NCBI RefSeq assembly: GCF_000315625.1
Contig: NW_005434614.1
Span: 430,272-494,271, forward strand
Direction of reading: 5' to 3'
DNA: 64,000 nt
Source of the DNA: Guillardia theta CCMP2712
Taxonomy: Eukaryota; Protista; Cryptophyta
Part shown: piece after piece, positions 17,580-48,861 of the stretch
How positions within the stretch are numbered: the first letter of the stretch is position 1
How the letters are laid out: the number at the start of each line of letters is the position of its first letter
The notes under the pieces: generated by a model
What the model was told of the DNA's origin: nothing
The model's input: only the letters and a program-made list of their open reading frames with translations
Databases searched by the model: none
Translations under genes and position numbers: made by a program

Positions 17580-17615
<36 letters not shown>

Positions 17616-18723: not shown

Positions 18724-18784
<61 letters not shown>

Positions 18785-18959: not shown

Positions 18960-19025
<66 letters not shown>

Positions 19026-19554: not shown

Positions 19555-24354
<4,800 letters not shown>

Positions 24355-25066: not shown

Positions 25067-25178
25067 CACGTGCCTGCCCGACCCACTAGGGCTGCGAACC
25101 GGCTGCGCTGCCAAGACACATCACGTGATATCACGTGACTCAGATTTGAAACACGTGACAATAATTTCTGGTCACGTG
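25067..25178. promoter_or_regulatory. Cluster of five CACGTG (E-box/G-box) sites
   Basis: CACGTG at 25067, 25122, 25132, 25152 and 25173; includes the perfect 18-bp palindrome TCACGTGATATCACGTGA (25121-25138). Regulatory function is inferred. Confidence 0.55.
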
Positions 25179-25227
25179 AGCTACCATGCCGAACGAGTTT
25201 TATATCAGTCACGGTCTGCGAGGAAGA

Positions 25228-25475
25228 AGAAGCGAGGAATGCAGGGAGAGGGAGGAGAAGCGAGGAATGCAGGGAGAGGGAGGAGAAGCGAGGAATGCAG
25301 GGAGAGGGAGGAGAAGCGAGGAATGCATGGAGAGGGAGGAGAAGCGAGGAAGGCAGGGAGAGGGAGGAGAAGCGAGGAAGGAAGGCGGGGAGAGGAAGGA
25401 GAAGCGAGGAAGGCCGGGAGAGGGAGGAGAAGCGAGGAAGGCAGGGAGAGGGAGGAGAAGCGAGGAAGGCAGGCA
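25228..25475. repeat. Purine-rich 28-bp minisatellite, ~8-9 copies
   Basis: Unit GCGAGGAA(T/G)GCAGGGAGAGGGAGGAGAA. Confidence 0.9.
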
Positions 25476-26040
25476 GGGAAGGGAGGGGGGATACATAGCG
25501 CGGGAAAGTCTTAGAGCTAGTAGTAGTGCAGGCTGGATGAGAAATTTTGAGGGCCAAGGCCGAGATTCTTGCGAGGGTGGGACGTCATGGAGTGTCAGAG
25601 ACACGAGAGTACACTGATGCGCATGACTGAGAACACGTCTTGCTGTGGTGCATACATGCAAGGGCTATGTAGTACCTTCACAGGATACACCAACTAGACA
25701 CAGCGAAACGAATACATCCGTGTAGGGATATGAAATGTGTGCTGCATTGGGGAATGCCAATCGAGGTTCGTGTTTGCTCTATAAGACTGTCTTCCCCGCA
25801 TTGGCCTTGCATAGCGCAGTAACAACATGCAGCGATCAATGATGGAATGGCAATCGTGACTGTGCCATTGGGATAGAAGTGAGGACGTACCAATCAAAAT
25901 CAGCGGTGGCATTCTCAACGAATAAACATGTGTACAACCGAAGAAAACAATTCACGAAAGACATTTATTCACAAGAGTCTCATGTAATCAAAAACAGTTG
26001 CAATCGAAACTCTTCACCAAGAAAAGCATCAGTCTTGTTC

Positions 26041-27493
26041 CTAGAAGCACACTGCTCCACTCGATCGCACCCCCACAAGTAGCACAACCGCCCCTGCCCC
26101 CTGCTGCTGCTTCCTCCCCCCAGGCTTCTTCTCTCCCCGGAACGCCTTCCATCGCACCACCTCGTACTGCATCCTTGCAGCCTTCCCTCCTCCCTTCTCC
26201 CCTCGGCTCCTCCGAGACGTCTCCCCATGGCCCTTCACGCCCCTCGCCTCCTCTGCCCGGTATCGACACATCCGGAACATCTCGCAAGGCCTGCCCTCAC
26301 CCGTCATCCCTCCCACCGCCCCTCCGCCCGTCCCTCCGTACTCACACTCGGTTAGTCGACCTCGTCGCCGCCTTGAGGTATCGTCCAAGCCGCTCCTGCT
26401 CTGCCGGGTGTACCAGGAGGTCCAGCGTCACCTCCTCCTTGAGGTCCCCGTACCATGGCGCCGCCTCCACGTACTCCCGCATCCCTCGCCCCATCCACCT
26501 GCCCATCGCAAGCCTCCCTGTCAGCTCCTCCCCCTTCCTCTCCTCTCGTGGCCCTACCGGATCGCTCCTGTCTCCGTCTCGACCTCCACCACGAGCATGC
26601 ATCCCGCTCGCCGCATCCCTGGTCGACCCTTTAGCCCGAGCGCTTCCCTCCCAGTGCTCCCGCTCACCTTCCCGAACCGTGTCCGACGACACCCCCGACA
26701 TGTAGGACCTGCAGCCCCACGACGCGTCAGCCTCCGGCAGCCCCTGGCCGCACTGCTGCTCGCACGCCTTCCTCGCTCTACCTGACGAGCTTCGAGGCCC
26801 CCTCGAGGATCTGGAACAGCGATCGCCCAGACGGCGTCAGCGCTCGCGGCTGCCGGGCCTCCCCGGCGTCTGCCGATGACGAGCGTGAGTGAGGTGCACA
26901 GAGGGCAGAGAGAGAGCGACTGCGGGACTGCACGTACCGAGAGGAGGGAGGAAGGCGTCGAGCTGCCTTAGAAGCTCCTTCTGGGAGCCGCGAACGCGCT
27001 GCTTCTTCTCCGCTAGCCTTCGTTTTTCTTCCTGATCAAAGCAGGGCTCGCTATCTGCTTGTGGTGAGTAGATTGCTGTGCTCGAATGCTGTAGAGAAGC
27101 TTCTTGCACTGACAGTACTGTAGCCATCGATACCGGCTTCGAGTCCCCCCAACTCCATTCCATTGTTGGCTGTGGGATGCCTGGGCTGTCGGTACTGTCC
27201 ATGATGCAGTCCTCAGGACTCTGAGTCTCGGAGGCATCAGAGAACATGTCGATTGATAGATGTAGCATTGCTGCGTCTTGCGCGTCACATGGCGGCTCGT
27301 TGTGACCAGGGGTGGAGTCTACTGCCCCCGAAGCTTCTTCCACGTCACTTTCTCTATTCATGAGAAAGTCGAGAGGATCCACCAAAAAGAAAGGTTCTAG
27401 GAGAGAGTCTTGAGCACACGTGAAAGTGAAGATTGGTCTGATATTCTCCAACCTGCTGTCTACAGTCCCCTGCGCTGAGCCGCTCCCGAGCAT
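26041..27493 (-). CDS. bHLH-PAS-like transcription factor, copy A
   Basis: Basic region/helix 1 KRRLAEKKQRVRGSQKELLRQLDAFLP; helix 2 GRSLFQILEGASKLVR; spliced PAS-like GCMLVVEVETETGAIRWMGRGMREY..LDLLVHPAEQERL..EMFRM; stop at 26041. Confidence 0.65.
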
Positions 27494-29353
27494 CAGAGCA
27501 GTGTACTCGACGTCAAGTTGCTAAGCTGGTCAGTTTCCAGCTGAGCACAGATGATAATGTGATGTGATGTCGGGTAACGTCGAGGATGAGGGTGTGGAAG
27601 GGCTCGGTAGTCTGGTACTGGGACGGCTCGAGATTGCCGGTGTCGTGGACGACGCTGATGTATGGAGGGAGGTGTGGGGGAGAGTTTATAAGGCCCTCGA
27701 AGCGGTGTAAGATCGGGGCAGGAGAATGGTCGGGCAACGGATAAGCGTTAGGATAGCCTCGTGACAGACTCGATCTCGAGATTATGTATTGTAAAATCCG
27801 TTTGGATCGCAAAAATCTACTTTGTCTGAGGCCCCATGCGATCCCTTCTTGCGACTGAGTACTTTCTGGATAGACTTTTGAAGAAGGTATACGTTAAACT
27901 AGGTATACGGCATACGTTACATTCGTTTGGATAGCATGCTTTCCAATAGCTCGGTTCTCAATCGTTTCAAAACTCCATCTTTTCAAGAGAGGCGTTGAAA
28001 TTTCAAAGAGTTGCTCATTTTACTGACACGGATTCCAACGGATGGCATGACTGATAGCTAGGGGGCAGCAGCGTTATATCTTGGAAGATCGATTTGATGC
28101 CTCGCAAAGTTGAGTAAAGTCTTTGCTCTGGCGTAACGCAGCGTGATGACCGTTGAAACCTGATCATTGAATGCTTCCCATACATGCTGAGTCGTTGAAA
28201 ACAACAACGAAACTTGAGAATGCATAACATCAACAGTTGAAAAACATTGAACAAATGCTTCAATTAAAACACGAACATCATTGACACATGAATCAAGAAA
28301 AAACACAAGGCGAATATACATAACAATGCAAAAATCTTTATTCAAACAAGGACCCATCTAACAAAAGCCCCTTGTCTGCCAAATAAGCCTAGAAGCACAC
28401 CGCTCCACTCGATCGCACCCCCACAAGTAGCACAACCGCCCCTGCCCCCTGCTGCTGCTTCCTCCCCCCAGGCTTCTTCTCTCCCCGGAACGCCTTCCAT
28501 CGCACCACCTCGTACTCCATCCTTGCGGCCTTCCCTCCTCCCTTCTCCCCTCGGCTCCTCCGAGACGTCTCCCCATGGCCCTTCACGCCCCTCGCCTCCT
28601 CTGCCCGGTATCGACACATCCGGAACATCTCGCAAGGCCTGCCCTCACCCGTCATCCCTCCCCCCTCCGCCCGTCCCTCCGTACTCACACTCGGTTAGTC
28701 GACCTCGTCGCCGCCTTGAGGTATCGTCCAAGCCGCTCCTGCTCTGCCGGGTGTACCAGGAGGTCCAGCGTCACCTCCTCCTTGAGGTCCCCGTACCATG
28801 GCGCCGCCTCCACGTACTCCCGCATCCCTCGCCCCATCCACCTGCCCATCGCAAGCCTCCCTGTCAGCTCCTCCCCCTTCCTCTCCTCTCGTGGCCCTAC
28901 CGGATCGCTCCTGTCTCCGTCTCGACCTCCACCACGAGCATGCATCCCGCTCGCCGCATCCCTGGTCGACCCTTTAGCCCGAGCGCTTCCCTCCCAGTGC
29001 TCCCGCTCACCTTCCCGAACCGTGTCCGACGACACCCCCGACATGTAGGACCTGCAGCCCCACGACGCGTCAGCCTCCGGCAGCCCCTGGCCGCACTGCT
29101 GCTCGCACGCCTTCCTCGCTCTACCTGACGAGCTTCGAGGCCCCCTCGAGGATCTGGAACAGCGATCGCCCAGACGGCGTCAGCGCTCGCGGTTGCCGGG
29201 CCTCCCCGGCGTCTGCCGATGACGAGCGTGAGTGAGGTGCACAGAGGGCAGAGAGAGAGCGACTGCGGGCCTGCACGTACCGAGAGGAGGGAGGAAGGCG
29301 TCGAGCTGCCTTAGAAGCTCCTTCTGGGAGCTGCGAACGCGCTGCTTCTTCTC
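26041..29353. repeat. Near-identical ~970-bp direct duplication, 26041-~27010 versus 28389-~29353
   Basis: Base-by-base identity apart from a handful of substitutions and one 5-bp indel; includes introns. Confidence 0.95.
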
Positions 29354-29725
29354 TGCCATCTTTCGCTTGTTTCGGAGAGTGCATGTAGTGGCCGCGGAGG
29401 ATTCTTGGTATGCCGATTCTTTGTTGGGCTGTTCATCAACCCACCGCCAAGCTGTTATTCCTGCTTGGGCATACGGACTTTCGGTTTCACTGACTAGAGA
29501 GTCGCTTCCTGATATCTCTGAGAAGCTTTCAACTTGGAGCCGAATCATGCACCTTTCCTCAGCGTCGCAAGGGTTCTGGCTGGAGTTCAGACCATGTAGA
29601 GATATGTCTGATTCATTGAGCTCGTCAGGATCGTCGAACATGAACTCGAGAGTGTAATCTGTCAATGCCTGCTGGGTATGACCGATGAAGCTATGCGTCA
29701 AATGCTCCTCCGTATCAATCATCAC
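28389..29725 (-). CDS. bHLH-PAS-like transcription factor, copy B
   Basis: Same bHLH and PAS-like exons as copy A (KRKMAEKKQRVRSSQKELLRQLDAFLP); different acidic N-terminal exon; stop at 28389. Confidence 0.65.
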
Positions 29726-30189
29726 ACTCCGCCCTTGTTGACCTGCGCCCCAACGGCGGAGAGGAGATTGTTTTTATATCCCCCGCCCCCCACAAATCAT
29801 CCGGCTGTTAGGATAAGACGTGCGTACATTATGCAGTCGGTTGATTAAAATTTTAAGAGGTCGCTCATGTTACGACACTCAACCGACGAGTGCTATCCGT
29901 TAAGATCTCGAGGGGATCATGATGCGTTCGCGAAAAGAGAGTGTTTCGGATGTCCTTTTCCTGTCAGTCACGGTCATCGGTTTTCCGTTGGACCCCTGTT
30001 TCCCTACAGTTGAGACGGGGTTTTATTGCCCCCTCTTCCGTTGCCCCCCCGTTGGAGGCTTGTCTGGTTCATTATCCCAACTTACATGACAGTACGTGAT
30101 TCGAAAACAAATGTTTTCGAAAAAGCAAAGTGCTGATAAAGGCAAGAAGGGGACTGGTGCAGAGGCAAGCTTTCGACGTGAGGAGGAGG

Positions 30190-31070
30190 CGATGAGCGAT
30201 GGTATCATTCCTAATACTTTCCCCTTTCTTGATACAAGATCATCATCGGTGTGCTGAACCTTTCACAGAGCTGAGATGATCGACGACCTTCTCTGTCAAG
30301 CTAAAAAGAATCTAGTCGTGAAAAAGCCAGATATGTTGATGTATGTTGTCCGAGCATAGAGTGCAGTGTAGCTGATAAACAATCTTCTGACCTAAAGTAA
30401 GCAATGGAACCAAATTTAGAGCTCCATCAACCAGAACCAGCCATCAACTCTGAGAGCAATGCTGAGGAACTACTCAAAAAGCTCGAGGAGGTCCTGAAGA
30501 CTCGAGGTGACTGAGCTCTTGGAGCCATCAGTATCTGACCATCATGTCAAGATCTTTCGTGTGTCAATCTCCTTCAATCCAGCGAGCTCAGCCCGCAGGA
30601 TGAAGTACTTCGAGACGCCTGCGAGGTTCTGAGGTATCAAGACATCCCTCCAATCCCCCCCCCCAACACCCCCCCCCCCCGTCTCACTCCTCTGCAGCAG
30701 GTTGGCCATCCAAAATGAGGAAGAGCACGGCGGCTCGGGCGGGAGCTCAGTCTCCTTTCAGCAGGGTAAGACCTCTTGCTAGCGCATGCGAGTGCCTTGT
30801 GCAAGGGTGCGCACGTCGATTTGCCTCCTAGCAGCTCCCCGTGGAGCTGACGCGTCCCTGTTCCCAGGTTTGCTGACAAGCTCCGAGATGCTGGTTTTCA
30901 CCGCACGGCTGCCGCTATGGACGATCATGTTCAAGGATAAGCTGTCTAGTTGAGACCTGACTTGCTCGCTCCCAGGGATATGGGGAGAGGAATGAAGGAG
31001 TTCACCGCCAACGTGCCATGGAGGAACGAGATGGAGCTTCGGCTGCCGCAGCTGATTCACCCGGGTGACA
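30190..31070 (+). CDS. Small multi-exon hypothetical protein
   Basis: Short coding-like exons (NAEELLKKLEEVLKT; FADKLRDAGFHRTAAAMDD) bounded by GT/AG; no family recognised. Confidence 0.3.
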
Positions 31071-31404: not shown

Positions 31405-32553
31405 TTAAAGTTGACCTGGGGCCTGCAGCTTGTATCCTTTCGCTCGCTTGCCCTCCACCCGCAGCGTCCTCCCGTGTCTCTTCTCCCTTACTTCTCGGCG
31501 CTTCCTCCTCTTTGCCCGCAGGCGCTTGTAGTACTGCCAGCGAGCAATGCAGATTACGGTCAGGGTGACGAACAGGGCAAGCAGCGCCAGGCACGCGACC
31601 ACCCAGGGGGCAAGGAAGGAGCAGGCACGTCCGATCCATCCAGACTTGCAGATGCAGACTCCCTCCACGTCGCAGACGCCATGGCCCGAGCAGATCTTGG
31701 GCGGCAACGGCCCGCCAGGACAGAGGATGCTGCAGCTGTAGTTTCGGTAGGCCACCTCGCACAGACAAGTCCCATCCTCCAGGCAGTTGCCGTTGCCGTT
31801 GCATGGGTCTGCCGCTCCCCCGTCGCACTCCCGCTGGCAGGCAGACAGGCGGTACCCGCTGTCGCACGTGCAGTTGCCGTCCTGCAGGCAGCGCCCGTGC
31901 CCCGAGCACACGTTGGTCGCTCCTCCAAGGCACTCAACCTGGCAACCTCCTCCTCTCCAGCCCGAGTCAACGTTGGCTGGCATCCCGTACTGGCAGTCAC
32001 AAGTTGCGTCTGCTCGGCAGTATCCGTGCCCGCTGCAGGAAGAGGTGTTGGCGGGATGGACGTTGGAGGGACACTCGAGCTCGCAACCGACGCCTCGGAA
32101 GCCGCTGTTGCACACACAAGCTCCGAGGGGGAGGGGGAAACTCTGCAAGAACAAATCAGCACAGCGACAGAGGAGCAAGGAGGGGAGAGGAGACTGAGAA
32201 GGAGAGCAACAGCAGCACAATCAAGAAGCATGTAGGACTGAGGAGACTGAGAAGAAGAGCAACAGCAGCACAATCAAGAAGCATGTAGGACTGAGGAGAC
32301 TGAGAAGAAGAGCAACAGCAGCACAATCAAGAAGCATGTTGGACCGAGATCAGTGGCCATCCGTTTGTCTTCAGGAACCTCGAGCCTCCATCCACAAGAA
32401 TGTCCTTGAGATTCTGCAGGCAGACGCCATGCTCAAAGCAGACCCCGGCCCCCTCCTCGAAGCCCGGGCACGACAGTCGGCAGTCCAGCCCGGCATATCC
32501 GATGTCGCACTTGCAGGTAGCGCTCCTAGAAGCAAAGCAGGTCACACAAGAAC

Positions 32554-32625
<72 letters not shown>

Positions 32626-32627
32626 GA

Positions 32628-32693
<66 letters not shown>

Positions 32694-35600
32694 TTCCTTA
32701 CACGTTGGACTGGTCGTGGTAAACGTCGCACGTGCCTCGTCCCGAGCATTCCCAGCCACTGGCTCCAGTGAAGACCATGGAGTCCTGGCCGGGGCAGAGG
32801 AACCTGCAGTCATCTCCTCTGTACCCGTAGTAGCACGCGCATGATCCGTCGGAGAGGCAGACCCCGTTGAAAGAGCACGGCTTTCCTACCTCTCCCTTGC
32901 ACTTGATGCTGCAGTCAGGGCCCGTGAAGCCGACGTTGCAGGAGCAGGTAGCGTCTGGGAGGCAGAGCCCCTTCCTCGAGCACGGGTTGTCCCATCCCCC
33001 TGGGCACTCTAGCTCGCAGCTATCGCCCGTCCAACCTGTCTTGCAGACGCAGGTTCCGTCACCGATGCACCCTGATTGGACTGTCCCGTGCTCGCACTTG
33101 GAGCAGTTGTCACGGATCAGGCTGATCGCCTGCTCTACAAGTGCAGCTGTCGCGGCGTCTGGCCAGGAGGAGCCGTCCGTGGGAGATCCTCGCTGTTCGT
33201 TGATGAAGCTTGCAAGGTCTGCTGCTGAGAGACCAGAAGTGTCTGCCCAGATTGTGGTGCTGGGAGCAAGACGAGTCAGGAGACAGCAAGTGAGGAGAGG
33301 AGAGAACGAGAGAGGTACGCGAGAAGAAAGAACAAAGCAAGGGTAGGAGAGATCAGGAACAATATGTTCTTACACATCCACAAGTCGCAGGCCCGTGAAG
33401 AAGGCGATCGCTTTGAAGTCACACGATTGACATTCTCCGTTGAGTCGCGCCCAGGGCCCGGGAAGTCGCTCAGAGGGGTAGGACGGGTTGACCCTCAGCG
33501 TGGAGTAGAACTCTTGTGCTGTTTGTTGCCCGTCAAGTCCCCTCCTGCGATCAGAATGTCAAATTTTGAACATCAATCATCAACTCTAATCACTCTTGCA
33601 GCTTCGTCCAGATGTTCTGCAGCTCTTGGAGGCTGAACAAGCCGTCGCCGTTGAGGTCATAGACACTCGCGCACGACAATATGTCGGTCTTTGAGATGTT
33701 GGAGAAGACCGGAGGAAAGAACACAACGATGTTGCACAGATCGACGATGTCGCCATTCGAGACCTCAGTGCCGTACACGATGAACTCAAAGAGAGGAGAG
33801 AGGGAGGGAAACATTGTTCCGACCTCGATCAGATATCTCATGACTCTGTACATGTCAAACTCAAGAGGCCAGTCCGTCTCCCATGTGCAGACAGCGCTGC
33901 CCGAGCAATCTTGCTGACCGCCCGGGCATGTGGCTCCCACGTTGGTCTCATTGCAGGTGCTGCCAGCGCAGAACAACAAACAGCCTGTGGCATCTGAGAA
34001 ACTTTGCCACGTGCTGGGTGGTCCTGAGCCAACACAAACTCGCTCCCCCGTCCTCGTCCCTTGGCAGATCGGACGAGCGTCAGCTCGGATGCTTGCCTCT
34101 GCTAAGAGGATACTGTTGAAGTTCCACCCAGCAAGAACTGTGATGACGTCCTGAAGTCTGTGCATGAGCATCGTTGCCTGTCCTCACTGTTAGAGGGCTC
34201 AAGATCCTTCACCTCCTCCCTTCACCTTCGCCTCGTCTCCGTGACCCGTGCACGCATTTTCAGCTCCTCCCATGCACGTGATAGAGCAGTCCCTGCCTCT
34301 CCTTCCCTTGTCGCACACGCAGACTCCGTCCCAGTAGCAGAGCCCCTTGACTGCCGTCAGCATCGCTAGAGTCACGTGAGTTCTTCACCTGATCCGAGCA
34401 CGCGACGCTGTTGACTCCCTTGGGACAAGCTGTCCGGTACTCGCTCTATGTGCACAAGTCACAGAAGAGAAGAAGAAGGAGGAGACGGAGAAGGAGAAGG
34501 AAGAGAAAGAAGAAGAAGATGGAGAAGGAAGAAAAGAGGAAAGAAAGGTGGAGAGGAAGGAGAAGCGGAAGGGGAGAGGAGGGAGGAAATTAAGAGCAGA
34601 GGTGAACAAGAAATGCCTGCATGTCAGCTGCTGAGATTTGAATGATGTCATACTGCGGAAACGCCTGCAGCCCCAACAGGAGGAAAGGGATTTTGTGATC
34701 TTCAAAGTTTCCTAGACCGAGCTGACCCTCTTGGTTGCTGCCCATCACGTACAGTCGAGGTACGAAGACGATCTGTCCTGGTTTGCCCAGCTCCATGCGC
34801 TGTCTGGCAAGCAGAAGCGAGTGGGAGTCTCCTCCTACAGCCATCACTGCATCCGATCCGAACCGCTCGAAGTCTGCCTCGGAGACGCAGGGGATAGGAG
34901 GCTGCCCGCTTGCTATGAGCGTGGCATCTGTTTCAGAAGCCTGCGGTACAAGTTTGAGCCTCTGGCCCCCGCAGCAAAGTCTCACCTGTCCAACATCGTA
35001 GAACGCTGAGCTGCAGACTGTCGAGCTCGACCTCAGCTGGCGAACAAGCTGGGGGGCTACATGGTAGAAGAGCCCGTTCCCTCCTGCTCTCAGGTTAGCC
35101 CGAGAGGAGCTCGAAGAGATCGGCGGCGACCGTCATCCAACGCTAAAGGAACTCCCAGCTGACCCTTTGAATTGTCGCCCCAGCTGTAAACATCTCCTAG
35201 CTCTGAGATCGCCAGGCTGCGAGCTAGAATCAACCGTCAAGACAGCAGGCAACCTGCTGGACCTGTGCCGACTTCCTGCTGCCACTCCAACGATTCGAAC
35301 TTTGATAAGGGGCTCGACTAGAGACGGCGTCAACTGCAGCGACAGGCTGTCAGGACAAGTTTGCCTCCAGTTGAAGGAAGAGAGATCAGACGAGGTAGAG
35401 CAGGAGCAGCAGCAGCAGCAGCAGGAGCAGCAGCCTGGACCTGATCGAAGAGTCCGCTAGAAGAATCCGTTCCTACCCCCACGTAGCAAACGCCTGCTGC
35501 TCCCTGATCCCTTACGATCGAGTTGCACAGCCCCAGCTGAAAGTGGCCCTGTCAACTCGATCTTGACGTCCTCCCTCCACGAGCCTCACCTGCCCGTAGT

Positions 35601-38600
35601 GGTTCCAACCCCACGCGTACAACCTGCCGTCGTCCGCGAGAGCGAGAGAATGGTAGAGCCCAGCTGCCACCTTGACAAACCTCACCTCGACTGTGATCCG
35701 TGTCAACCCGATGACCACTCACAAAAACCCGCAGGCGGGCGGGCGGGCGGGCGGGCGGGCAGGCAGGCAGGCAGGAAGATGGAAGGAGGAAGGAAGGAAA
35801 GAAGGCAGGAAAGAAGGCAGGGAGGGTGTACCTCCTCCAGCCATGACTTTGACTCTTTGAGGAGCTCGTCTTGTCACCCGATCGTTGAGCCCCAGCTGAA
35901 ATCTCATTAGCTGGGTCTAATAGCTGACTGGCTCCGCACCTGGCCCTTGTTGTTGTAGCCGCACGAGTAGAGATGCCCCGAGGAAGCGACTAGAAGACTG
36001 TGAGCGTATCCGGCAGCTGCCTCCACCACTTGCTCCCCCAGGCTGTAAAGCTGATCGTTCATGGAGGGGCTGGAAACTGTCGGAGCCATCATTGCCGAGC
36101 CCAGGCCCAGCTGGACAAGCTTGTTATGTCTCCACAAGCGCAGGAGCGACTCACCTGCCCGAACATGTTCCAACCCCACGTGTAGAGTAGACCGTCGGAA
36201 GTCCAGGCGAGAACATGAAAGGATCCAGCAGCTATGCCGGTGACGTTCTCCTGTTCGAGACGATCAGGTGTAAAGGTCAAGGGAAGAAGGACGAATGCTT
36301 TCAGTAGAGCAAGAGGAGCCATGCAGGACAAGCCAGAAGCAAGACGATAATCAAGAATGAAACTTGCCTGATCGATGTTCTTCGTGCAGACGATCAGCCC
36401 TTCCGAGCTGAGCACCTGACGGCAACAAGTCCTGATAATGCTCGGCACACTCTTGCTCTTGTAGTCGCCTGTCCCCAGCTGACCAAGGTAGTTGTCACCC
36501 CACGTGTAGACCTTTCCTACTAGCGGCATCGTCCCTGGCGCGTCCCTGAACGTCTCCCTAGCGATCGCGACGCCGAAGGTCTTGCCCAGCACAAATGCTG
36601 CCACGTCCTTCCCCTCCAGCGCAGAGACTGGGGTAGGGCTGAGCTCGCAGTTGCTGCAGGAGGGCGAAGTTTGGTTGTGCCCAAGGTTCAGCCACTCGTT
36701 GACGCCGAAGGAGAAGGGTTGGCGGACGCCATTGAACTTGAGGTAAGGGCCGCTGTAGCTGACGATGAAGTCTGCCGAGTCAATGAAGTTGTCTCCTATA
36801 CCCGGGCTCAGCGGGACGGCAAGCAAGGAACCGTCCTTGATGAGGGTGCAGATGGTTCGAGGGCTGGACTTCTGGCCGTTGACAGCGACTTCAATGCTGA
36901 CACGTCCGTGCGTTGAGACGCTGGGGGTGCGGCAGAGGATGACAGTCTCGCTGATATAGGTCGCTTCTGTTGCCTGCAGTTCTTCTCCAAACCTGCACAT
37001 GAGCTCGGAGGTGTTGCGGAAGTACTTGCCGACGATGGTAAGAGTGACGCCGCCGTAAAGAGGGGAGGAGAGAGGAGATACCGTATCGATCACCCAAGGG
37101 AGGGAGTAGTAGAAGAGAGTAGAGCTCTCTGAAAAGTCCTCACTGTTCAAAGAGACTCTGACGTTGACTGGGGACAGGTAGGAGTCAGGAGTTGATAGGT
37201 TAGCTAAGAAGAGCATCGGAGGAAAGCGAGCGACAAGGCTGAAAGTGTCCAGGAATTTCACGTAAGGAGCAAGACATGTCTCGTTGAAAAACCTCCCGCA
37301 TATGTTCTGATCGCTCACCCTGACCACCAAGTCCTCAGTGTCGACAAACCCTTCTCCGATGAGTGTGATGGTTGTGTTGGAGAAAAAGTCTCCAACGTCA
37401 GGATGAATGTTGGTGAGGTTGATGAGCTCATGGAACCTGTACTTGCTGTCTTGCAGAGTCTGCTGACACATGTAGTAAGGATATGCGGGTGTGCTGGTGT
37501 CGTCCAGACGACATTCCTGAGCATAGCTGGGGACCTGAACCCAGTGCTCGCCGTTCATGGTAACGAACATGACGTTTTCTTCGTACACGCCAACGTCAGG
37601 GTTGACAAGAGAAGAAGAGGACTGGTTGGGAAAGTTGCACTCGAGTATCTCCGAAGACAACTCAAATGGGTCCCAGGCACACATGAAGTTGGCTGGCAGG
37701 CAGATCGATCGGCGATATCCGGGGACAAAGTCGTTGCGAAACATGCCGGGAGGGACTGGGAGGCCGTTGCAAGGGATGGGGGAACGAGGGCAGGAGGGGT
37801 TGTAAGGGCGCTTGATGAGGCAATCTTGTAGCTTCTGGTCCCTGATGAGGGTGGAGGGCCGGAGGAGGAGGACGCTAGGAGGGAGGCAGGTCAGCATCGT
37901 GGAGTTGTCGACAGTCAGAGGCGTCGGTCGCTGTGGGTAGAAGAGGCAGGAAGCTCGCTGGTCAGGATCAGATACGAAGAAAGTCCCGCGGATGACCGTC
38001 AGGTTTCCCCCCGTCTCGGGCCCGATGGTGGGAGAGAAGGAGGTCAGAGTCCACATGGCGACGTAGCGGAAGCTGCCGCAGTAGAGCTTGGAGATGTAGG
38101 AGAGGTCGTTGGTGCGCATGAACAGCCCCCACTGTAGCGATTTCTCAGCGCAGGAAAAGCGAGAGGGATCGGAGAGGGAGACGTAGTTGATGCCGTCCAG
38201 GGAGAGGGAAACGTTGAAGGTCCAGACAGCAGGAAGGTACTGCGAGCCTAGTGAGTCAGGAATGGCCCTCCAGATCTTGGGGAAGCGAGCGATGAACTGG
38301 TTGTTGTCGACCACACGCGGAGCAAAACACTTCTGCCTCCTGCTGCCCTGCCGGATGTTGAGAGCGTACGAGGGCCCGGCCGAGGCTTCAAGGAAGCAGT
38401 CAAGGAGAGGCGACAGACCGGAAGGAAGGAAGCCGTCGCCTGTGAACGTGACCTCGGTGTTCTCGATGTACGGGCCGACGGCAGGAGAGATCTTAAGGAT
38501 GGTAGGAGGTCGATAGAGGAGGATAGGAAGGGGGTCAAACTGCCCCTCCTGCTGCTCCCGCTGACTCCAGTGCTGCCCGTCCAACGTGACTTGGAGCTCG

Positions 38601-41600
38601 ACAAGCCCCAGAACGTTCTCGCCCGAAAGATCCGGCATGATACAGACAAGTTGGTTGAGGCCAAGGAGAAAGGCTCGTGAAGATAAGACAGACCAGCTTG
38701 CAGTCGAGAACTTGCAGGCAAGCTTGTCATGCTGCGAGTAGATCACCTGTCAACAAAAATCAGTGAGGCAGCAGTGAACTGAAGCACTTGACCTCCATCG
38801 GACAAGAACCTGGTTGAAAACTCTTGTACCTGAACGGAGAGAGTTAGAGAGATCAGCTAGCGATTGAATAAGAACATCAACTCGTTCCATCCTCCAACTT
38901 CACCAACTTGCTCCCTCCATCTCTCCCCCATCAATCCCCTCTCCCTCCCTTCCCCCCTCCCCTCCTCTCTCCCTCTCTACGCGTCTCTGTCATCGAATCA
39001 TTCCAATCTTCCAGCAGCATCTACATTTGTGTCTCTTGCCACGCATATTCGAGAATATTTGGAAGCAATTTACCAGAAGCTTCCTTCAAACAAGGCCCCT
39101 CCTCCTCCAGTGTTTGCAAAAGTGTCGGCAAAGCAACTCTTCCTTCTCCTGGGCTCTGACACAAACGAATGGTTGAAAGCAGAAGAGACCGTGACGGTCA
39201 CAGGGCTGGTGATGAAGACAGCAGACGGAAAGACGTTTTGAAGAGAAGGAGAGGTGAAGTAATAGAAGCTGATTCCCTGGTTTGACCAAACCCTGCCGTC
39301 AAACGTGACCTCCAGCGGCACTGAGCCGTTGTACTGCAAGGGAGGGGAAGAACAGGTCCAAAACCCGGCCTGCACTAGGGTGGCAGGGACGACCTGGAGG
39401 TCAAACTTGCAGAAGATGTTGTTGCCGGCGTTGGAGATGTCAGACTGTATGCTGTCGAGGTGAAGGAACTGGAGGGTTACTTGAGTTCCTCCTGCCATGG
39501 GTCCGCTCTTGGGGGTGATGGAGAGGATGGTGACCTGGGGGCCGCATGCAAACCCTGTGAAGCCGATGCCCGTGCAGTTGCAAGCCGAGAGCATGCCGTT
39601 GGTGAGGGGGTCCTGGTACTGATAGCAGTTGCCTCTACCCGAGCAATCGAAGGGGCAGGAGGAGGAGGTGGACTGAAAGTACTGGAAGGACGGGAGGACT
39701 GTAAACTTGTAGTTGAGGAGCTTGAGGTAAACGGCGACGGTCTGGATGATGGAGCTGGGGGGAGGGCTGACTATGAGCTCGTTGTCGGAGGTCGACTGGA
39801 TTATGGTTCCGTCAATGGCTCCGAACAGGACGGACCATGCGGCAGACTGGCCGAGCTTGGAGGGCTGAAGGAGGTTAGAGCCGAAGATGGTGACAGGGGA
39901 GCTAGACTGTACAGCCATGGCTGAAGGAACGACGTTAGAGAAGACAGGCTGAGGATAGGTTTGAAAGAGGATGTCATTCACGCTGTCGAACTCCTCGCCG
40001 TTGTATGACAGGCGGAGGATGGAGGTTCCGATTGGAATGCCGGCCGGAGTGATACATAAGATGTTTGCTTTGCCGGAGTTTGAGAAGTATGCTCCCCGGA
40101 ACACAACGTCTGCTACCTTGCAGAAAATATCATGGCCTCCGTTCTTGGGCTCCAGGAACACACCATCCACCGTGATGGATGTCCCTCCAAAGACGGGCCC
40201 GGCCGATGGGTAGACGTTCTGGACGACAGGATATCTGTAGTAGGTGAAGAACTCGTAGCGGATCTCGTCCAGGCAGCCTCCAGCAGGGTTTGAGGAGTAC
40301 CAGCAGTTTGTGGTCCCTCGCTTGACGCAGTAGGAGTTGCCGTTGGCTGCGATGTACACTTGGGATCCAACGTCGCAGTCCCAGGAGCAGTAGGACACGT
40401 CGCCGCACCGTCCCGGCTTCCAGATGCAGAGCTCGCAGCTCACAAAATCTTTGCTGTTCATGGTGAGGGTAAGCTGGGGGGCGTCGGCGAAGCGCTCTGG
40501 GGCAGGGCAGATGATTTCGGTGGCGGTGACGAACACAGCTTCTGTGTAGAGGAACTCAAACTTGCATCGGAGGTCGGGATGGTCGACGAAGCCTTTGCCG
40601 TACACGTGAATTTGGGTGCCTCCGTTGAGGTTCCCAGCCTTGGGGTAAAAGTCTTGGAAGAGGAAGGGGCGGTAGTAGAAGAAGGTCAGCTCCTGCGAGT
40701 TCGGTTCCCCCGGATTCATCTGAATGCCAACAGTCGTCTGAAGAACTTGAGGAGAGCGGCCGAACAACCTGAACTCGCTGATCCCAACCACCTTGCTCCC
40801 GTCTGGACGGCCCACAACATCTCGAACTACCAGTCGCACTCGGTTGACATCGGCAGGCTCGTCCCTGCTCAAGTAAACTGAAGGCATCTCGAAGAACTAG
40901 GAGCAAGTCAGCACCAAGACAAGTCAGCGCCTCCTCACCTTCTCCTCCCCAGCAGTCCAGGAGACCTCCTGCTTCACGTCATCCAGCACCTGCCACGTCT
41001 CGCCGTCTACGGAGCCCAGCACCTGCCAGCTCGACGGGGCGTCATAGACCGAGAAAAGCTCGTGCTGAACTTGCTCGCTAAGGTCGACGAGGCCGCTGCT
41101 GAGCTTGATGCTGTAACCCGCCACCACCTGCCTCGGCTCGACGTTGATGCGGAAACCTGTTGACCCTTGCGTGAAGCGATACTGCAGCCACTGGGGCATG
41201 CCCGGGGAGGAGAACCAGCTCTTATAGTCACTCTGACCGTCAACTGCGTTGATCGCCTGCCCTGTGAGGACTCGAGAGCCATTGAGAGTCGAGACGAAGA
41301 AGCTGCTCTCCGACGACGATGTCACCAGCCCCCCAGCTGAGCTGATAGGCCTCGCGCTGAAGTCAACGCCAAAAGCAGGAAAATGCAAGAGCGCAGGAGC
41401 TGAGCAGACAAGAGAACCATCGTAGCACTTCCCCGTGCTTGGGTTGCAGGAGCTTGTAGAGTCCCAGGCAGCTGTCACCGTGACGTTGCCGAACATGCAC
41501 ATGTAGGTCTGATTGCCGGGAGGAGGACGGAGAAACGTTCCCATGACCGAGACTGTCGTCCCTCCTTCCGTGGGGCCGCTGGAGGGGTAGACCCACTCAG

Positions 41601-44600
41601 CACGACCGTATCGGAACCTGGGAACGGCGAAGGTGTGAACAATCTGACGGTTGAGAGAAAGCTTGAGGGGAAGGGTCTCGGGGAGAGGATGAGGAGGGGA
41701 GAGACAGACGAGCTGAGACTGACTGATCAGAGTGGCAGGGGTCAGAGGATAGTTTCCGAACCCACAGGCCAGCAGGGACTTGAGCTGCGTCTGCTGAGCT
41801 GACAAAGCGGTTACAGCGAACATGCCCGAGCCGAAACGATCCCCGAGGACTGTGACAAGCGCTCCTCCTCCAGCTGACCCGATGGTGGGGAAGATTGACA
41901 AGGGATAGGGAGAGCAGAAGTCGTTGACGAGGTTGTATCGCTCAAGTCGGACTAGGGTGTTGGTGAAATCTCTGCCGTTCAGAGAGACTTCCAGTGGGAG
42001 AAAGGGAGTCTCCCCAGAGCTCTGACGGATTACGTCAGGAAGGGAGCAGAGAATGGTAGAGGAGCTGACGACTATTCCTTGGAAGACGTTGAGCGATCCG
42101 AGTTTGCAGCGAGGAAACCTGACTCCTCCCTCCGCAAGCTTGCTCTCGTCAAAGGCGAAGTTCACTCCTGTGACTGTGATGACGACCGGGTTGACCATCC
42201 TGCCTCCTTGGAAGATGCTCTCCCACTGCAAACACCCCGGCTCTGACTGGATCGCTGTTCCATCACGTCAGGAGCATTGCAAAAGCAGATCAAGAGCAAC
42301 CTGCTGGATTTTCGTCGCAGAAGTCGCAGGAAATGGAAGCGCCTCCTGGAAGCACCTTGATGCACTGCGGCAACGTGCAACGAGCGGGACGTCCGAAGGG
42401 ATTGACGTTTGCGATGGCATGGAAAGTGAACAAGTTGACGGTGCGGGAGAAATCTTGGCCATTGAGAGAATACTCGACCTGGGACGTAATCGTCAACAAA
42501 GTTAGAATTACAATCATGCCAATTGATTCACAAAGACAAGCAACAATGTCATCGTCAAAATTCAACTTATCATTACAATCATCGCTATCTTCTACCATCT
42601 GCATCATCGAAACATCCGAAAGCACCTGAACAGCACCAGCGATGCCCGCATCAGAGATATTGGGCCAGGAAGGTACGGTACAAGTCATCCGAGTAGCGTT
42701 GAGGATCTATCAAAACGCGTCAGCAAATTCCAGTTCAACTTCATCTTGATTCCTACCTGCCCCGGAACTTGATGACTCCCAAAGCGACAGGAGGGGCCCA
42801 GCAAGGTGTACGATCTCAACTGCTGAGGACTGATGTAGCTGGGGTCAAACTGCGCTGGCGACAGGTCGATGACAAGTTCGTATCCTCCATCAGCCGGGCC
42901 GGCAGCTGGGGTTATGCTGATGAGAGGATAGAGGGAGTAGTAGTTGAACTTGTTGGCATTGTGTGTCCATCCGTTCACACAGCCTGCGGGTCCGTAAGGG
43001 TTCAGTTGACTTGCAATGCAAACTTCAAGGAAGGAGAAGAATCTTCCCTGAGGAGCAAAACACGTCACAAAAGACCCACTGGCATCGAGAGTAGCAGCTA
43101 CTTCGAGCATGTTGAAGCTGAAACGACAGACAGAGGTGCGAGAGTGGTTCAGGTTGGTCCCAAACACAGTGACCAAAGTCCCTCCCTCCAACGGCCCCCC
43201 GCACGGCTCGATGGAAGAGATTTGATAGAGCAACAAGGAAGTAGACGATAAGATCGACTGCTGACCGTTGGGACTGACCTTGACCATCGTTTCTGACAAG
43301 GAGGAAGAAGGTTGAATGTCTTGAGGGACTGAGCAGGTGATGGAGCTGCTGTTCACATACTTGGCTGGTAGCTGCTGGTTGTAGCCCACTAGCCCGCAAC
43401 TCAGGGTGTCCATGTGGAAGAAGCCTGAGCCAAAGATGGTGATGTTGAACCCTCCGGCTGCTGACCCGAAAGTGGGAAGGATGAAAGAGAGCACAGGATC
43501 AAGGTAGAAGTAGAAGACGATGCCGGCATATGCCTCGAAGAACTTCGTGCTGGAGGAGGAGACGGAGACGTTGGCGGCAAGCAGACCTCGAGCATCTGAG
43601 CTGAGATTGAGACCTTGGACTGAGCCTGTTGTGCACACAACGACATCTCCATGTACAGTCCCTGACAGCACAAGGTCTCTCTCGCCGATCTGAAGCTGGC
43701 AGACTGGGGAGGAGATTAGGCCAAGGAAAGGGCCAGATAGGGATATAATCGTGTTCCCTTGGACTGGCCCTGAACTCGGGTGAACTCGATCGATCCCGAA
43801 GAAGCCAAGGGAGAGGAAGGAAGAGAATCGCTCTCTGTCGTTAGAGACATCCACCAGCAGCAGCAGGCCCCGCGAGTTTTGTTGCTCGGGGGTTGAGCAT
43901 GTCAACAAAGTTGAGGACAGGAAGGTCGCAGCGGAGACAAGGGTCTTGTTGAACCTGCAAGATAAAGTCTTCATGTTCTCAAAGTTTGCTCCAGCAATAG
44001 TCAAGAGACAAACAACTCCTGCCGGGCAGCTACGAGGAGCAACGCTTAGCAGGGAAGCAGCATCGTAGACGAGGAAAGATACGTTGGCAGGAAACCATTG
44101 CTGCCTGTTCTGACTGGACTTCACTGACAAGGTGGAGGGGGAATTGAACATCGTAGTCTGAAAGAACATGAAGCTCGAGTTGATCAGTCTTGGAGCTATT
44201 AGAACATTCCCAATGACAATCTCAACGGCCTCGTCAAAGTTGGATCCAACGACTGTCACGACAGCAGTCTTGCTAACACGAACGTAGGAAGGCAGCAATG
44301 AATCGATCTGTGCTGGAGCATAAGTTTGAAACACGACCGGGGCAGACCACGTGCTGTTCGATCCCGCAGAGATACTGAAGTTGTACAGGCAGACACTTAG
44401 GCCAGGAGGAGTGACGCAAACCACGAAGGAGGCGTTCAGCACAGATCCCGCAAAGATCGTCTCCGAGGTGGAGCAGGAGGATTGAAGCCTGCAGCTCACT
44501 TGAAGGAGGCTGTCGAGGTTGTAGCCCGAGATAAGAGCCCTCGTTCCTCCTCCAGCTGGACCCGAGCCCGGTGAGACCGCTGAGATGGTGAAGACATGCA

Positions 44601-47600
44601 CGTGGAGCGAGTCAGGGAAGGAAAAGAAACTCTGACCGTCGAAGGAGAGAGAGAAGGTCAGAGAGTCGTTGAAAGTCAACTGCCTCGTAACGGAGATAAC
44701 AACATACGCGCACTTGTCTCTCGGATTGACAATCACATTTTCTTGCCCGGGTGCGCTTATCTTGTAGGGCAACGAGGTCGAGTTTTGACCACAGCCGTTG
44801 TAGAAATGACAATCAACAGCAGACGAGTTCACATCACTTGCCTTGCACTGGAGCAGTCCTGAGTTGACAAACCCGAGCCCTCGAACGCTGATGTCAAACC
44901 TGACAGGACGAGGATACAGAGGGAGCGCAAGAGGTCTGACATCGTTGACAGCGGGAGGAGGAGTGAAGAGGAAAGGAGGAGCCGAGGAGTCCAAGAAGGA
45001 GTACCCTCCGTCAAGCGAGACGTTGAAGTTCGCGCTGCTGTAGATCCCGATGTCGGCAGAGAACAAAAAGTCAATCTGCGAGAAGTCGAGGGAGAGTTGC
45101 GGGGAGACGCAATGGATGCGAGAAGAGGAAGAAAATGACCCTTGGGTGAGCTGAGAAATGACAGCACTGCTGAACTTGCACAGGATACCTCTAGATGCAA
45201 TGAAACCCTGGCCTACCACCTGCAGTGTGATGGCTCCCAGCACGTTGGTCATGGTCGGGACGAGGGACGTGACAGTCGCCTGAGATGAGAAGAGAGAGAA
45301 GCGTATGTCGTCCGAAGTCAGTACAGTGTTGGACATGCCGATCGGAACTTGTCCGAGGTCAAGAAACAGGCGCAGCTCGCTGGCTGCTGTCTGTAGCGAC
45401 GGCTGAGAGCATATGACGGAAGAAGCGGAGGAGGAGATCTGAGAGGAGGAGAGGACAGTGCTGCTATCATCGACCTTGTACAGGCAGAGGATGCTGTTGT
45501 CAAGCCGGAAAGAGAAGAGATTGAATCCAAACAGAGTGATCCGTCGGGAGCTCGAAGAAGCCACAGGCCCGGCAGCAGGAAGAATCGAGTTGATGCCATA
45601 GAAGAGGAAGCGCATAAAACTGGCGACAGAGAGAAACTGCTGGTTGTTGAGACTGACCTCGACGACCAGCTCAGCTGCTGCTGAGACAGGGAGAGGAGGA
45701 ATAATGCACATTACCGCTTGCATAGTGAAGTTGTACCTCCCCTGTACGGTCCCAGCTTGTCCGAACCTGCAGCTCAGGTCCGGATGGGCGAAGAATTTTG
45801 CGCCTGCTATGTAGAGCGTGTAACCTCCAGCTCGAGGAGAGGCTGAGGGGGCCATGCTCAGGGGGACGGGGTTGTCGTAGTAGCGGAAGACGAGGAGGTC
45901 CTCAGTGAAGCTGTTGGTCATGTCGTTGAGGCGGATCTCGATGGAGATGTCCATGCTCTGCAGGTTGGCGGGCTTGGCAGGGGAGAGGCACCTGAGGGAG
46001 GCCTGGTCGACCAGGCTCGCGGCTACCAGGATCTCACCCATGAAGAGACAAGCCATCTCGATCCCGTCATTCATCGCCGTGTTGAGGTTGGGGCCGAGGA
46101 TCAGAATGCTCGTTGAACCATCGACGGGGCCATGGGAGGGGCGGAGCTCAAAGATGGAGTAAAACATGAAGTCGACATCTTGACTTGTGAACTGCTGCTC
46201 ATTGAAGGTGATGGAGACTGCCAGTGAGAACTCGGAGATGTTGAGCTCATTCAGCTGCTTGTCCGGGTACACCTGCAGCAGCCCAGGAGCGTCGCACCTG
46301 TACCGCGGGCCAGCACGGAAAGCAGCAACAACACACTTGCGGTAAGTTGGCATCGTCTTGCTAGTGAAGCAGCAGGTTGGGGAGGAGGAGCGCCCGTAGC
46401 TCTGAGGAGGAAAGAAAGATCCAATGAGCGTGACGGCTACGTTGCCCATGACAGGTCCGCTCTGAGGGCGGATGCGATCGAGATGCGGCTCATGGTAGAA
46501 GACGAAACGAAGCTTGTCTTGCGAGTAGATCTTCCCGTCGAAAGAGACGTTGAAGGTTGAGAGGGACTGCGAGACCTCGCTCGGCATGCTGATTGCAGGA
46601 GAACGACAGAAAATCTGTTGCGTCGTCACAGACTCGTTGCTAAGGAGGTTGGCGGGGAGCAAGGAGACGACAGACTGTGAGAACATGCAGGTCGCGTTGA
46701 CGAAAAGATCAACTGGCACGGAATGCGACAACGTGACATTCAAGACTGCACCTCCTAGCATGGATCCACCTGAAGGAACAAAATTGACGATGGCAACGAA
46801 ATGAACAACATCTTCAGTCTCAAACGACTGCATGTTGTTGCTGATAGCAAGAAGAGTTCTTCCTGCGGGAACGAGACTGGGCGAAAGGCAAACTATCAAT
46901 GTCGAAGATCTCCAGGCAGCTGGAAACATAAGATGGGTTGCTGTTGTATTGTAGAGCTTGCAGGAGAGAAGAGAATGATTGTAGAAGTTCTTCCCCACGA
47001 TCTCAATCGGGAACGAAATCGAGACTGGCCCGATGGGTGGAGAGATTTTGAAAGTTTGAATGTCTGGCAGGAAGAGGAAAGAAAGGTTCTGTGCACGTTG
47101 ATCGGCATGAAGAATCACTTGCAAGGACGAGGGAACGACATGAGTCAAACTTGTAGGAGCGATTGTGAAATTCATCTGCGTGAGGGGAGGGAGTTTGCAC
47201 GTGAAAGTAGACCCGACCTGGTCTGTTGGAATCATCAATGTTCTCCCCATCACTAACAACAGGCAGTACGACCCGCTGCGGATATTGAGCCCTGCTATTG
47301 AGATCGTTGCGCTATGCGAGGAGGGGCCGAGACTGGGAGAGATGCTTTCAGTGACGTAGAACAAAACTTTCACGGTCTCTGCACTGTCTGTCGTCCCCGA
47401 GTGATACTGATTGCCGTTGAGAGACAGGTAGACTGGTAAACCTTGCAGGTTGAAAGGACATGGAGGGACTGTACACGTGAGTAGGCTGGAGGATAAAACC
47501 TGACCAACGACGTCTGATTCAAAGTCTCCAAACTTGCATCGAGGGGATCCATTAGCAAAGTTTGCTCCTATGATAGTGATTTTGGACGAGCTGTCCGGCG

Positions 47601-48861
47601 GAACGAGCGAAGGAGAGACTGCGCTGATGATCGGATTAGGAAAGAACGCGAAAGGAAATATCGGGCTGACTTCATGACCGTCAAAAATGAGAGAGAAGCT
47701 GGTAAGAATCGTTGAGTCATTCGCTACTCGAATCCTGGGTGTGAGACACAAGATGTTGCCATCATCGATCAGATGTAAAGATGGAAATGAAACGTAGATG
47801 AAGCCATCGCTCGAAAAGACTCCGCCATCGAAGATCCCAGCCATGAAAGGTGCAGGACCAAACTTAACCCTAGTGAATGAGAATGCATTCGAGAAATTTC
47901 TGCCATGGACAAGGATGATTGTTCCTCCTTCAAACGAGGCAGAGGAGATGGAGATTCTGTCAACCACAGGGAAGTTTGAGTACATGAAGACTCTGCTCTC
48001 ACTCGAGAAGGTTTCGCTGTCCAGGGAGATCTCAAGGTATACAAGACAGAGCGAAGGGCTCGACGAACAACTCGCGATTTCTTCTCGTTTGGGGGAGGGA
48101 CATGATATTCTTGACTGCTGCATATTCGATTGTGCTGGCACGTCGCATGCAGTGATGTTATTGTAGAGGCATTCAGATGCACAAGTCGTGTCACAAGATG
48201 CGCAGACTCCGTCTAGTGTACAGAACCCTTGATTGATCCCTCCACTAGCGTATAGCAAGCAAGTGCTCGATTGAGCGTTGACTGGGGAGGACGAAGATAG
48301 CAAGGTTCTCCTAGATCTGCAAATCACCAAAGACGCGTCGCCCCCGACCTTCTCAAGGACCTCTACATCCAACGCTCCCGCATCGACTTGCTGCTCGAAA
48401 CGACAAGATGCCTGATGCCTCGATGAGTCGAAGGTCGGAGGAAAGTTTGCAACGACAACTTCGACAGGCGTGCCTCCGAGCAGCGCTCCTCCTGTAGGCC
48501 AGAAGGAGAGAATGGCGTAGAAGTAGAAGTCTGATTCCAGCAGAATACCAACTTCATGAAGCACCTGAAGCTTCGATGGAGTCGGAATGTCCACCCTTGG
48601 TGACAAACACTGAAACTCATCCACACCCGGCAGAGAGTGAGCTCGTGAGGAGATAGTGCGCGAAGAAAGGATGAAGAAGCACGTCACCGAGGTGTTGACT
48701 GACTGACCGAGACTAGAACGAAACCCTGTCAAACGCAATCGCTTTCCTCCTCCTACCGGAGCAAAGTTTCCATTCACCACTTCAACTTGCGATGCCCCAG
48801 GCAAAGACAAGAGCAACAAACTGAATGTGGTATACAAATACGGGCGAGCGGCAGCAACCAT
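31405..48861 (-). CDS. Giant type-I membrane protein (~5,000 aa): signal peptide, many IPT/TIG repeats, F5/8-C (discoidin)-like domain, RCC1 repeats, EF-hand-like loop, EGF-like repeats, TM helix, basic tail
   Basis: ORFs of 2058, 435, 605 and 885 aa join via short GT-AG introns (e.g. VPGQ|ILNAT, AGEEK|FFEMP); repeated P..GP..GGT.V.I.G..F, C.F, C.SP and VS.NGQ.FS motifs; RCC1 motifs YTWGDNYLGQLG and AAGLYHSLALADDGRLYAWGWNHYGQ; YDLNGDGLFSLQEL; CSGHG.C...C.C..GW.G..C; TM WVVACLALLALFVTLTVICIA followed by RAKRRKRR. Confidence 0.8.
32187..32339. repeat. 53-bp minisatellite, ~3 copies, intronic
   Basis: GAGGAGACTGAGAAG(A/G)AGAGCAACAGCAGCACAATCAAGAAGCATGTAGGACT with period 53. Confidence 0.9.
32555..32692. 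repeat. (CAG)n tract of ~45 units, intronic
   Basis: Lies between EGF exons, inside a minus-strand GTAAG..AG intron. Confidence 0.9.

Follow-up and report, generated by a model that had tools for sequence, protein, structure and literature searches.

The window analyzed here is a 64,000-nt stretch of the genome of the cryptophyte Guillardia theta CCMP2712 (contig C60, positions 430272-494271; the genome comprises 87.1 Mb in 669 contigs). Its minus strand probably carries a single nuclear gene for a type-I glycoprotein of ~5,130 residues, and the product would be a surface filament that serves adhesion or recognition, or forms part of a fibrous coat. From the N-terminus, the predicted protein consists of a signal peptide, ~32 TIG domains with a large insert, an RCC1-like beta-propeller, an EGF-like module, a linker, a stalk of EGF repeats, one transmembrane helix, and a short basic tail (Table 1). 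Giant proteins with this TIG-RCC1-EGF architecture are a conserved but uncharacterized cryptophyte family.

Structure of the gene

The gene model was built by reading each gap on the minus strand. An intron was placed where a GT/GC...AG pair restored the frame and where homologues with an uninterrupted frame could be aligned over the gap. In the coordinate check of the resulting model, no in-frame stop is found and all 22 introns have splice ends, of which 21 are GT-AG and one is GC-AG. The start methionine (ATG at 48861) is the first after an in-frame stop, and the next large minus-strand open reading frame (ORF) upstream begins only at 52867. The stop codon occupies 31405-31407. If two in-frame introns of 147 and 117 nt were retained, the protein would have 5,218 residues. 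Intron lengths range from 42 to 253 nt, and twelve introns are only 42-53 nt long. A CTRAY motif is located 7-28 nt (mostly 12-17) upstream of the 3' splice site in 12 of the 20 introns modelled first. An earlier, sequence-only reading had proposed one minus-strand gene over this span. Its coordinates proved exact, the 23 exons remain in phase and open throughout 15.4 kb, and the seven junctions it named (42.7k, 42.3k, 40.9k, 39.1k, 36.2k, 34.6k, and 33.6k) are all introns of the model.

Most introns are crossed by a homologue that reads through. Introns 1-3 are supported by the orthologous contig L024 from a metagenome, in which a single 1,325-aa ORF reads across them and with which exon 1 is collinear. 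Removal of the 147-nt intron also eliminates a spurious hydrophobic stretch. At intron 4, the orthologous contigs L012 and L015 are continuous, and introns 5-6 are supported by the uninterrupted relatives P0001 and P0129. The mini-exon between introns 5 and 6 was detected because both relatives have 14 residues between the flanking exons. Introns 7-15, inside the propeller, are supported by P0154, which holds the entire propeller in one frame. One of these introns, the 117-nt GC-AG intron, is open in frame and resembles coding sequence; once it is removed, its flanks align to P0154 without a gap. The junction of the TIG array with the propeller is spanned by P0113, a transcript of Rhodomonas salina.

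Table 1. Positions of the features of the gene and of other features in the window.
Feature	Position	Strand	Description
Whole coding region	31405..48861	minus	23 exons, 22 introns; coding sequence 15,393 nt, ~5,130 aa; frame check from coordinates only
Start codon and signal peptide	48787..48861	minus	~25 aa; one Arg, hydrophobic core, small residues ahead of the cleavage site
Rest of exon 1	42757..48786	minus	18 scored TIG domains, a probable N-terminal TIG, Cys-rich insert in the second; Pfam TIG E 8.6e-78
Exons 2 and 3	42626-42706 and 42301-42478	minus	Supply the rest of a TIG domain that is split over exons 1-3
In-frame 147-nt intron	42479-42625	minus	GT...AG ends, 37% GC; precisely 49 codons without counterpart in the orthologue
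Exon 4	40939..42254	minus	Three TIG domains, then first part of the large insert; Pfam TIG E 2.3e-17
Large insert, ~185 aa	40759..41355	minus	Possible galactose-binding (discoidin-like) sandwich; split by the 42-nt intron 4 (40897-40938)
Exon 5	39074..40896	minus	End of the large insert, four TIG domains, two Cys-rich inserts (one EGF-like); Pfam TIG E 2.1e-25
Mini-exon 6, 37 nt	38793..38829	minus	Translation agrees with P0001 and P0129 residue for residue
Exon 7, 5' part	36681..38746	minus	Five TIG domains and a Cys-rich insert; Pfam TIG E 8.8e-31
RCC1-like beta-propeller	34608..36680	minus	Exons 7 (3' end) to 16, nine introns; Pfam RCC1 E 6e-19 and 1.6e-10
In-frame 117-nt GC-AG intron	36251..36367	minus	Donor GCAAGT; its 39 residues are exactly those missing in P0154
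First EGF-like module	34226..34445	minus	Exons 17-18; aligned to the paralogue by eye
Linker, ~300 aa	33110..34177	minus	Exons 19, 20, and start of 21
EF-hand-like calcium loop	33623..33658	minus	D-x-N-x-D-G-x-F-x-x-x-E; loop positions 1, 3, 5, 6, 8, and 12 fit the consensus
Teneurin-type EGF stalk	31612..33109	minus	About nine repeats; exons 21-23, two repeat-filled introns
Transmembrane helix, 23 aa	31543..31611	minus	Single; Kyte-Doolittle 2.98
Polybasic cytoplasmic tail, 45 aa, and stop	31405..31542	minus	K-x-Y-K motif near the end
Repeats of the locus	32555-32693, 32187-32348, 34463-34564, 35399-35434, 35731-35825		All in predicted introns; explain the longer introns
CYFIP/Sra-1 ORF, 1,413 aa	11664-15902	minus	Full FragX_IP, E 1.7e-138; type of a WAVE actin-regulatory complex subunit
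Protein kinase ORF	53632-54636	plus	E 9e-47
501-aa ORF	59611-61113	minus	Weak PH domain

Architecture of the ectodomain

Pfam was run exon by exon, and the other searches used single exons or naturally uninterrupted homologues rather than the joined protein. The TIG family (PF01833) scores above its cut-off of 20.9 bits in four exons (257, 63, 89, and 106 bits). A self-built TIG profile finds 30 domains inside single exons. To these are added one domain split over exons 1-3 and one probable N-terminal domain recognized by eye, for a total of ~32. The sequence-only reading had counted 20 or more IPT/TIG repeats. The array itself is borne out by Pfam and by the self-built profile, and the count is revised upward. 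In the PDB, the TIG domains match plexin-A4 (E 1.6e-4).

The large insert is found where a discoidin-like insert had been proposed, and it is uninterrupted in the orthologues L012 and L015. It is possibly a discoidin-type sugar-binding domain, judging from sequence likeness. Three of its conserved blocks resemble the discoidin pattern by eye, and every near neighbour in the ESM Atlas is an F5/8 type C cluster (0.85-0.88), a match that serves only as a lead. The presence of the stretch at the claimed place held, whereas statistical significance for the discoidin assignment was not reached (Pfam E 0.003-0.004; hhalign 0.13). Pfam is silent on the insert of the uninterrupted orthologue, and the insert is not among the 44 places that a discoidin profile lists genome-wide at E up to 1. 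The hhalign comparison, made with the five genuine discoidin domains of the genome, gave its probability of 0.13 with few sequences in the profile. PDB sequence searches with the insert return only a GH92 mannosidase (E 0.028-0.09). Elsewhere in the genome, contigs C33 (~19,100-30,350) and C165 (~11,500-22,700) carry two ORFs of ~3,340 aa, each with at least 10 tandem genuine F5/8 type C domains.

The RCC1-like propeller follows the array. Its RCC1 matches (PF00415 / PF25390) score 68.8 and 41.8 bits against a cut-off of 21.7 bits. Six blade motifs of the G-Q-L-G type and a degenerate first blade were counted by eye. The region is collinear with the uninterrupted P0154, which spans positions 2-300 of the 363 in the RLD profile. 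With P0154 as query, the propeller matches UVR8 in the PDB (E 2e-48), and also RPGR, HERC2, RCC1, and BLIP-II (E 3.9e-11). An RCC1 propeller had been proposed at this place, and both the Pfam score and the collinearity with P0154 confirm it. The RCC1 propellers known in eukaryotes belong to intracellular proteins, among them RCC1, HERC, RPGR, and UVR8.

The membrane-proximal part of the ectodomain is made up of EGF modules and a linker. The first EGF-like module shares 51-59% identity with the EGF found after the propeller in members of the paralogue family, and Pfam is silent on the 40-aa piece. The linker belongs to no Pfam family and has no other copy in the genome; a profile comparison gives only a weak match to the linker of the paralogue (E 6.6e-4). 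Within it lies the putative calcium loop. An EF-hand has a canonical 12-residue loop between two helices and normally comes in pairs. An EF-hand loop had been claimed, and the canonical 12-residue loop is indeed present, but it is below significance and no partner hand was found for it. The loop matches the third EF-hand of calmodulin (E 0.017) and EF-hand clusters of the ESM Atlas (0.83), and it is not kept in the paralogue family. The stalk is recognized by Pfam as EGF_Teneurin (PF23106; E 3.5e-15 and 2.5e-12, or 56.2 and 47.1 bits against a cut-off of 24.3), in agreement with the EGF stalk proposed earlier. It is 40-45% identical to the paralogue and to P0109.

Membrane topology

The protein is a type-I, single-pass protein with a giant ectodomain, in which the signal peptide was read by eye. 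The transmembrane helix is the sole 19-residue window in any exon with a Kyte-Doolittle value above 2.4. A basic run adjoins the helix, and a Cys is located at the helix end. The tail aligns with that of the paralogue to its very end, and the polybasic run and the K-x-Y-K motif are common to the paralogue family. The three elements named at the two ends by the sequence-only reading, i.e., a signal peptide, one transmembrane helix, and a short basic tail, are all retained. The combination of an N-terminal signal peptide and a C-terminal helix makes the protein type-I and places the propeller outside the cell. The translation contains 55 N-x-S/T sequons and 206 Cys residues, which is consistent with an ectodomain. 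Plastid targeting was considered and rejected because the predicted cleavage site is followed by a residue other than Phe. Cryptophyte plastid pre-sequences are expected to have Phe at this position.

A conserved cryptophyte family

Relatives were sought with a profile-free search. The top 150 matches are mostly TIG-array proteins, and they were sorted by local BLAST. The closest relative within the genome is a paralogue on contig C7 (~1,021,187-1,038,676), with a 5,149-aa ORF and a 678-aa tail frame. Like the window gene, it has a TIG array, a full RCC1 propeller, one EGF, a linker, a teneurin-type EGF stalk, a transmembrane helix, and a polybasic tail with K-x-Y-K. A genome search gives 45% identity between the tail modules of the two genes. 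The paralogue differs in being almost intronless and in lacking the insert. The linker of its type is also different, being well conserved and without a calcium loop.

Full-length relatives were sought with the propeller-to-linker region of the paralogue, and the matches are ~50% identical to this query. They include P0221 (5,805 aa, 27 cluster members), P0325 (6,033 aa, with both a signal peptide and a transmembrane helix), and P0358, a complete 5,977-aa ORF from the transcriptome of Teleaulax amphioxeia. P0227 and P0257 also matched. The full-length collinear relatives, of 5,800-6,000 aa, come from metagenomes and from the T. amphioxeia transcript; the transcripts of R. salina are fragments. 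BLAST run exon by exon aligns P0221, P0325, and P0358 with the window gene in collinear order from its first exon through its final one. Together with the paralogue, these three proteins are 24-30% identical to the window gene over most of its length.

Orthologues of the window type (P0154, P0001, P0113, P0365, and contigs L012, L015, and L024) share 35-51% identity with the window gene but only 26-30% with the C7 type, from which it follows that the two subfamilies are old. The insert is confined to the window-type subfamily. On these sequence comparisons, the window gene belongs to the insert-bearing one of two ancient subfamilies of the cryptophyte TIG-RCC1-EGF family. P0109 (assembly GCA_041447055.1) is a more distant member and is preceded by an adjacent 2,327-aa TIG ORF. 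Contigs L012, L015, L016, and L017 and two more with a window-type orthologue all end within a few hundred bases past the propeller exon, which suggests that a repeat or a low-complexity intron breaks the assemblies there.

The domain combination had been described as one found in no characterized protein. This holds in the literature searched, where no paper on a TIG-RCC1-EGF architecture or on TIG proteins of Guillardia was found. The combination is not unique: it is shared by a conserved family of cryptophyte proteins, one of which is a paralogue encoded by this genome.

Comparison with known surface proteins

Fibrocystin (PKHD1) and PKHD1L1 are similar in being giant single-pass proteins with a long IPT/TIG run and a short cytoplasmic tail. 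They lack the RCC1 propeller and the EGF stalk that are both present in the window gene. Pfam listed no G8 or PbH1 (parallel beta-helix) module for any exon at E up to 0.01, and membership in the fibrocystin family was rejected on this ground.

Plexins and Met/Ron share with the window gene a seven-blade propeller and an IPT/TIG stalk in a type-I receptor. Their propeller is of the Sema type and is located at the tip, while that of the window gene is of the RCC1 type and lies next to the membrane. Pfam reports no Sema or PSI domain, and the 45-aa tail holds no GAP or kinase domain. Plexin membership was rejected because Sema, PSI, and RasGAP are not reported and the tail has only 45 residues.

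Teneurins and tenascins provide the EGF models with which the EGF repeats of the window gene score best, and only in the kind of EGF repeat are they alike. Teneurins have a type-II orientation and contain NHL, YD-shell, and Tox-GHH modules, whereas the window gene encodes a type-I protein. None of these modules is reported by Pfam, and teneurin membership was rejected on orientation and on the missing defining modules.

Bacterial giant surface proteins with TIG and RCC1 modules (for example, P0137 and P0220 of Candidatus Saccharibacteria) have extracellular propellers of the RCC1 type, often beside TIG domains. They possess many tandem propellers and no EGF stalk, and none has a type-I anchor with a basic tail. 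BLIP-II, which is among the PDB matches of the orthologue propeller, is likewise a secreted RCC1-like propeller. It is an inhibitor that binds beta-lactamase tightly.

Two proteins from Joint Genome Institute (JGI) metagenomes, P0268 (5,571 aa) and P0294 (5,309 aa), have RCC1 propellers, teneurin-type EGF, and a C-terminal transmembrane helix with a basic tail. The self-built profile finds no TIG domain in either protein. The theme of extracellular RCC1 plus EGF is therefore wider than the TIG-RCC1-EGF family.

Possible roles

The signal peptide directs the protein into the secretory pathway, and the C-terminal helix anchors it, which leaves all that is between them outside the cell. The ~32 TIG domains would form a glycosylated rod that, if extended, may reach ~100 nm or more and hold its tip at a great distance from the membrane. 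About two thirds of the way along this rod would sit the insert, which may bind sugar. The membrane-proximal base would be composed of the seven-blade-type RCC1 propeller, the linker with its one calcium-loop motif, and the rigid EGF stalk. Of these, it is chiefly the propeller that would serve as a platform for protein binding. No enzyme domain is present in the polybasic tail, which would most likely be a tether to acidic lipids or to the submembrane skeleton. Such a long surface filament may serve the adhesion or recognition of cells or particles, or be part of a fibrous cell coat. Among the roles considered, adhesion or recognition appears the best candidate, followed by a structural role in the coat and, a long way behind, by a flagellar role. 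The sequence-only reading had proposed a very long protein for adhesion, recognition, or the flagellar surface; of these options, the flagellum is the one that no result points to.

Several points weigh against this reading. The one-gene model derives from splice consensus and homology. Introns 16-22 were placed through looser collinearity with the paralogue and P0109 and are the least certain, and three of the introns, of 147, 117, and 45 nt (the last at 34941-34985), are in frame and may be retained, in which case they would add 49, 39, and 15 residues, respectively. The signal peptide is a visual reading of the translation. Both the insert and the calcium loop are below the Pfam thresholds: the insert matches F5_F8_type_C (PF00754) with E 0.004 and 17.7 bits against a cut-off of 28.2, and F5_F8_type_C_2 with E 0.0027; the loop matches EF-hand_1 (PF00036) with E 0.0023 and 17.8 bits against a cut-off of 25.4. 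AlphaFold2 models were unusable for the L012 insert (8-row alignment; mean predicted local distance difference test (pLDDT) score 42.9) and for the linker exon alone (pLDDT 36.9). Function is deduced from topology and domain types.

The protein may instead be a structural brick of the cryptophyte coat, i.e., a surface periplast component and not a receptor. Many TIG giants would then act as a brush that sets the thickness and mechanics of the coat. This is somewhat unlikely, yet it is the alternative that fares best. It fits the many glycosylation sequons on the ectodomain, the tail without a signalling domain, and the other giant TIG ORFs of the genome (16,482, 8,567, 7,360, and 5,133 aa). 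A pure spacer, however, needs no conserved propeller, insert, or tail motif, and the separation of the two subfamilies since before the cryptophyte genera diverged suggests specific partners. Proteomic data on the coat were sought, and none were found. The full set of giant ORFs with TIG matches is located on contigs C67, C134, C56, C44, C24, and C40 (16,482, 8,567, 7,360, 5,133, 5,288, and 4,625 aa, respectively), some of them with EGF repeats.

A location on the flagellar membrane is improbable. There the protein would be an anchor or spacer for hairs, or a sensor of flow or contact, as fibrocystin and PKHD1L1 are on cilia and stereocilia. The idea draws on the fibrocystin-type build, which combines one membrane pass and a short tail with a giant ectodomain of TIG domains. 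The ciliary targeting signal of fibrocystin is described as a motif of 18 residues within the cytoplasmic tail (PMC2812845). The tail of the window gene also has a basic run beside the helix and a Cys at the helix end, but this is a resemblance only; the tail has no tested ciliary motif, and G8 and PbH1 are not reported by Pfam.

That two or more genes, or a decaying pseudogene, merely look continuous is hardly credible: although the model is sequence-derived and some 3' junctions depend on loose collinearity, this is disfavoured because single-frame relatives exist, with the same domain order in ORFs of 5,000-6,000 aa that include a complete transcript ORF, while all 23 exons are open and in phase and orthologues are 35-51% identical over the TIG, insert, and propeller exons.

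A long surface filament for adhesion or recognition is thus the favoured role. A bolder and rather doubtful proposal is that cryptophytes made the RCC1 propeller a general extracellular sensing module on TIG stalks, a functional counterpart of the Sema-IPT arrangement of plexins. The rod of the window gene would then pass a pull or a ligand contact to the base of propeller and EGF stalk and act as a mechanical or contact sensor.

Introns, repeats, and neighbouring genes

The tandem repeats of the gene are all within predicted introns or the 3' untranslated region. The intron repeats comprise (CAG)46, 3.1 copies of a 53-bp unit, and short purine-rich and GC-rich repeats. The (CAG)46 tract reads as poly-Leu, poly-Cys, or poly-Ala, depending on the frame, and could mislead a gene caller.

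The introns at 36111-36154, 35896-35939, and 35537-35589 cut successive RCC1 blades at an identical point, G-Q|L-G, and are all in phase 0. The propeller is intron-free in the orthologue P0154 and in the C7 paralogue. Repeated gain at a favoured site and retention are candidate origins of the introns in the window. Pairwise comparison of the short introns revealed no shared element.

Three other ORFs of the window have domain assignments and are listed in Table 1.

Implications

A 37-nt mini-exon, a GC-AG intron, and stop-free in-frame introns would defeat simple gene callers, and the locus is a test case for annotation. Cryptophytes are major aquatic algae whose cell-surface molecules are almost unknown. 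The window gene and its relatives indicate that these algae keep very large single-pass proteins with an extracellular RCC1 propeller. If the family forms a fibrous coat, or serves recognition for mating, of prey, or with the ciliates that capture Teleaulax, it would be the first molecular handle on those processes.

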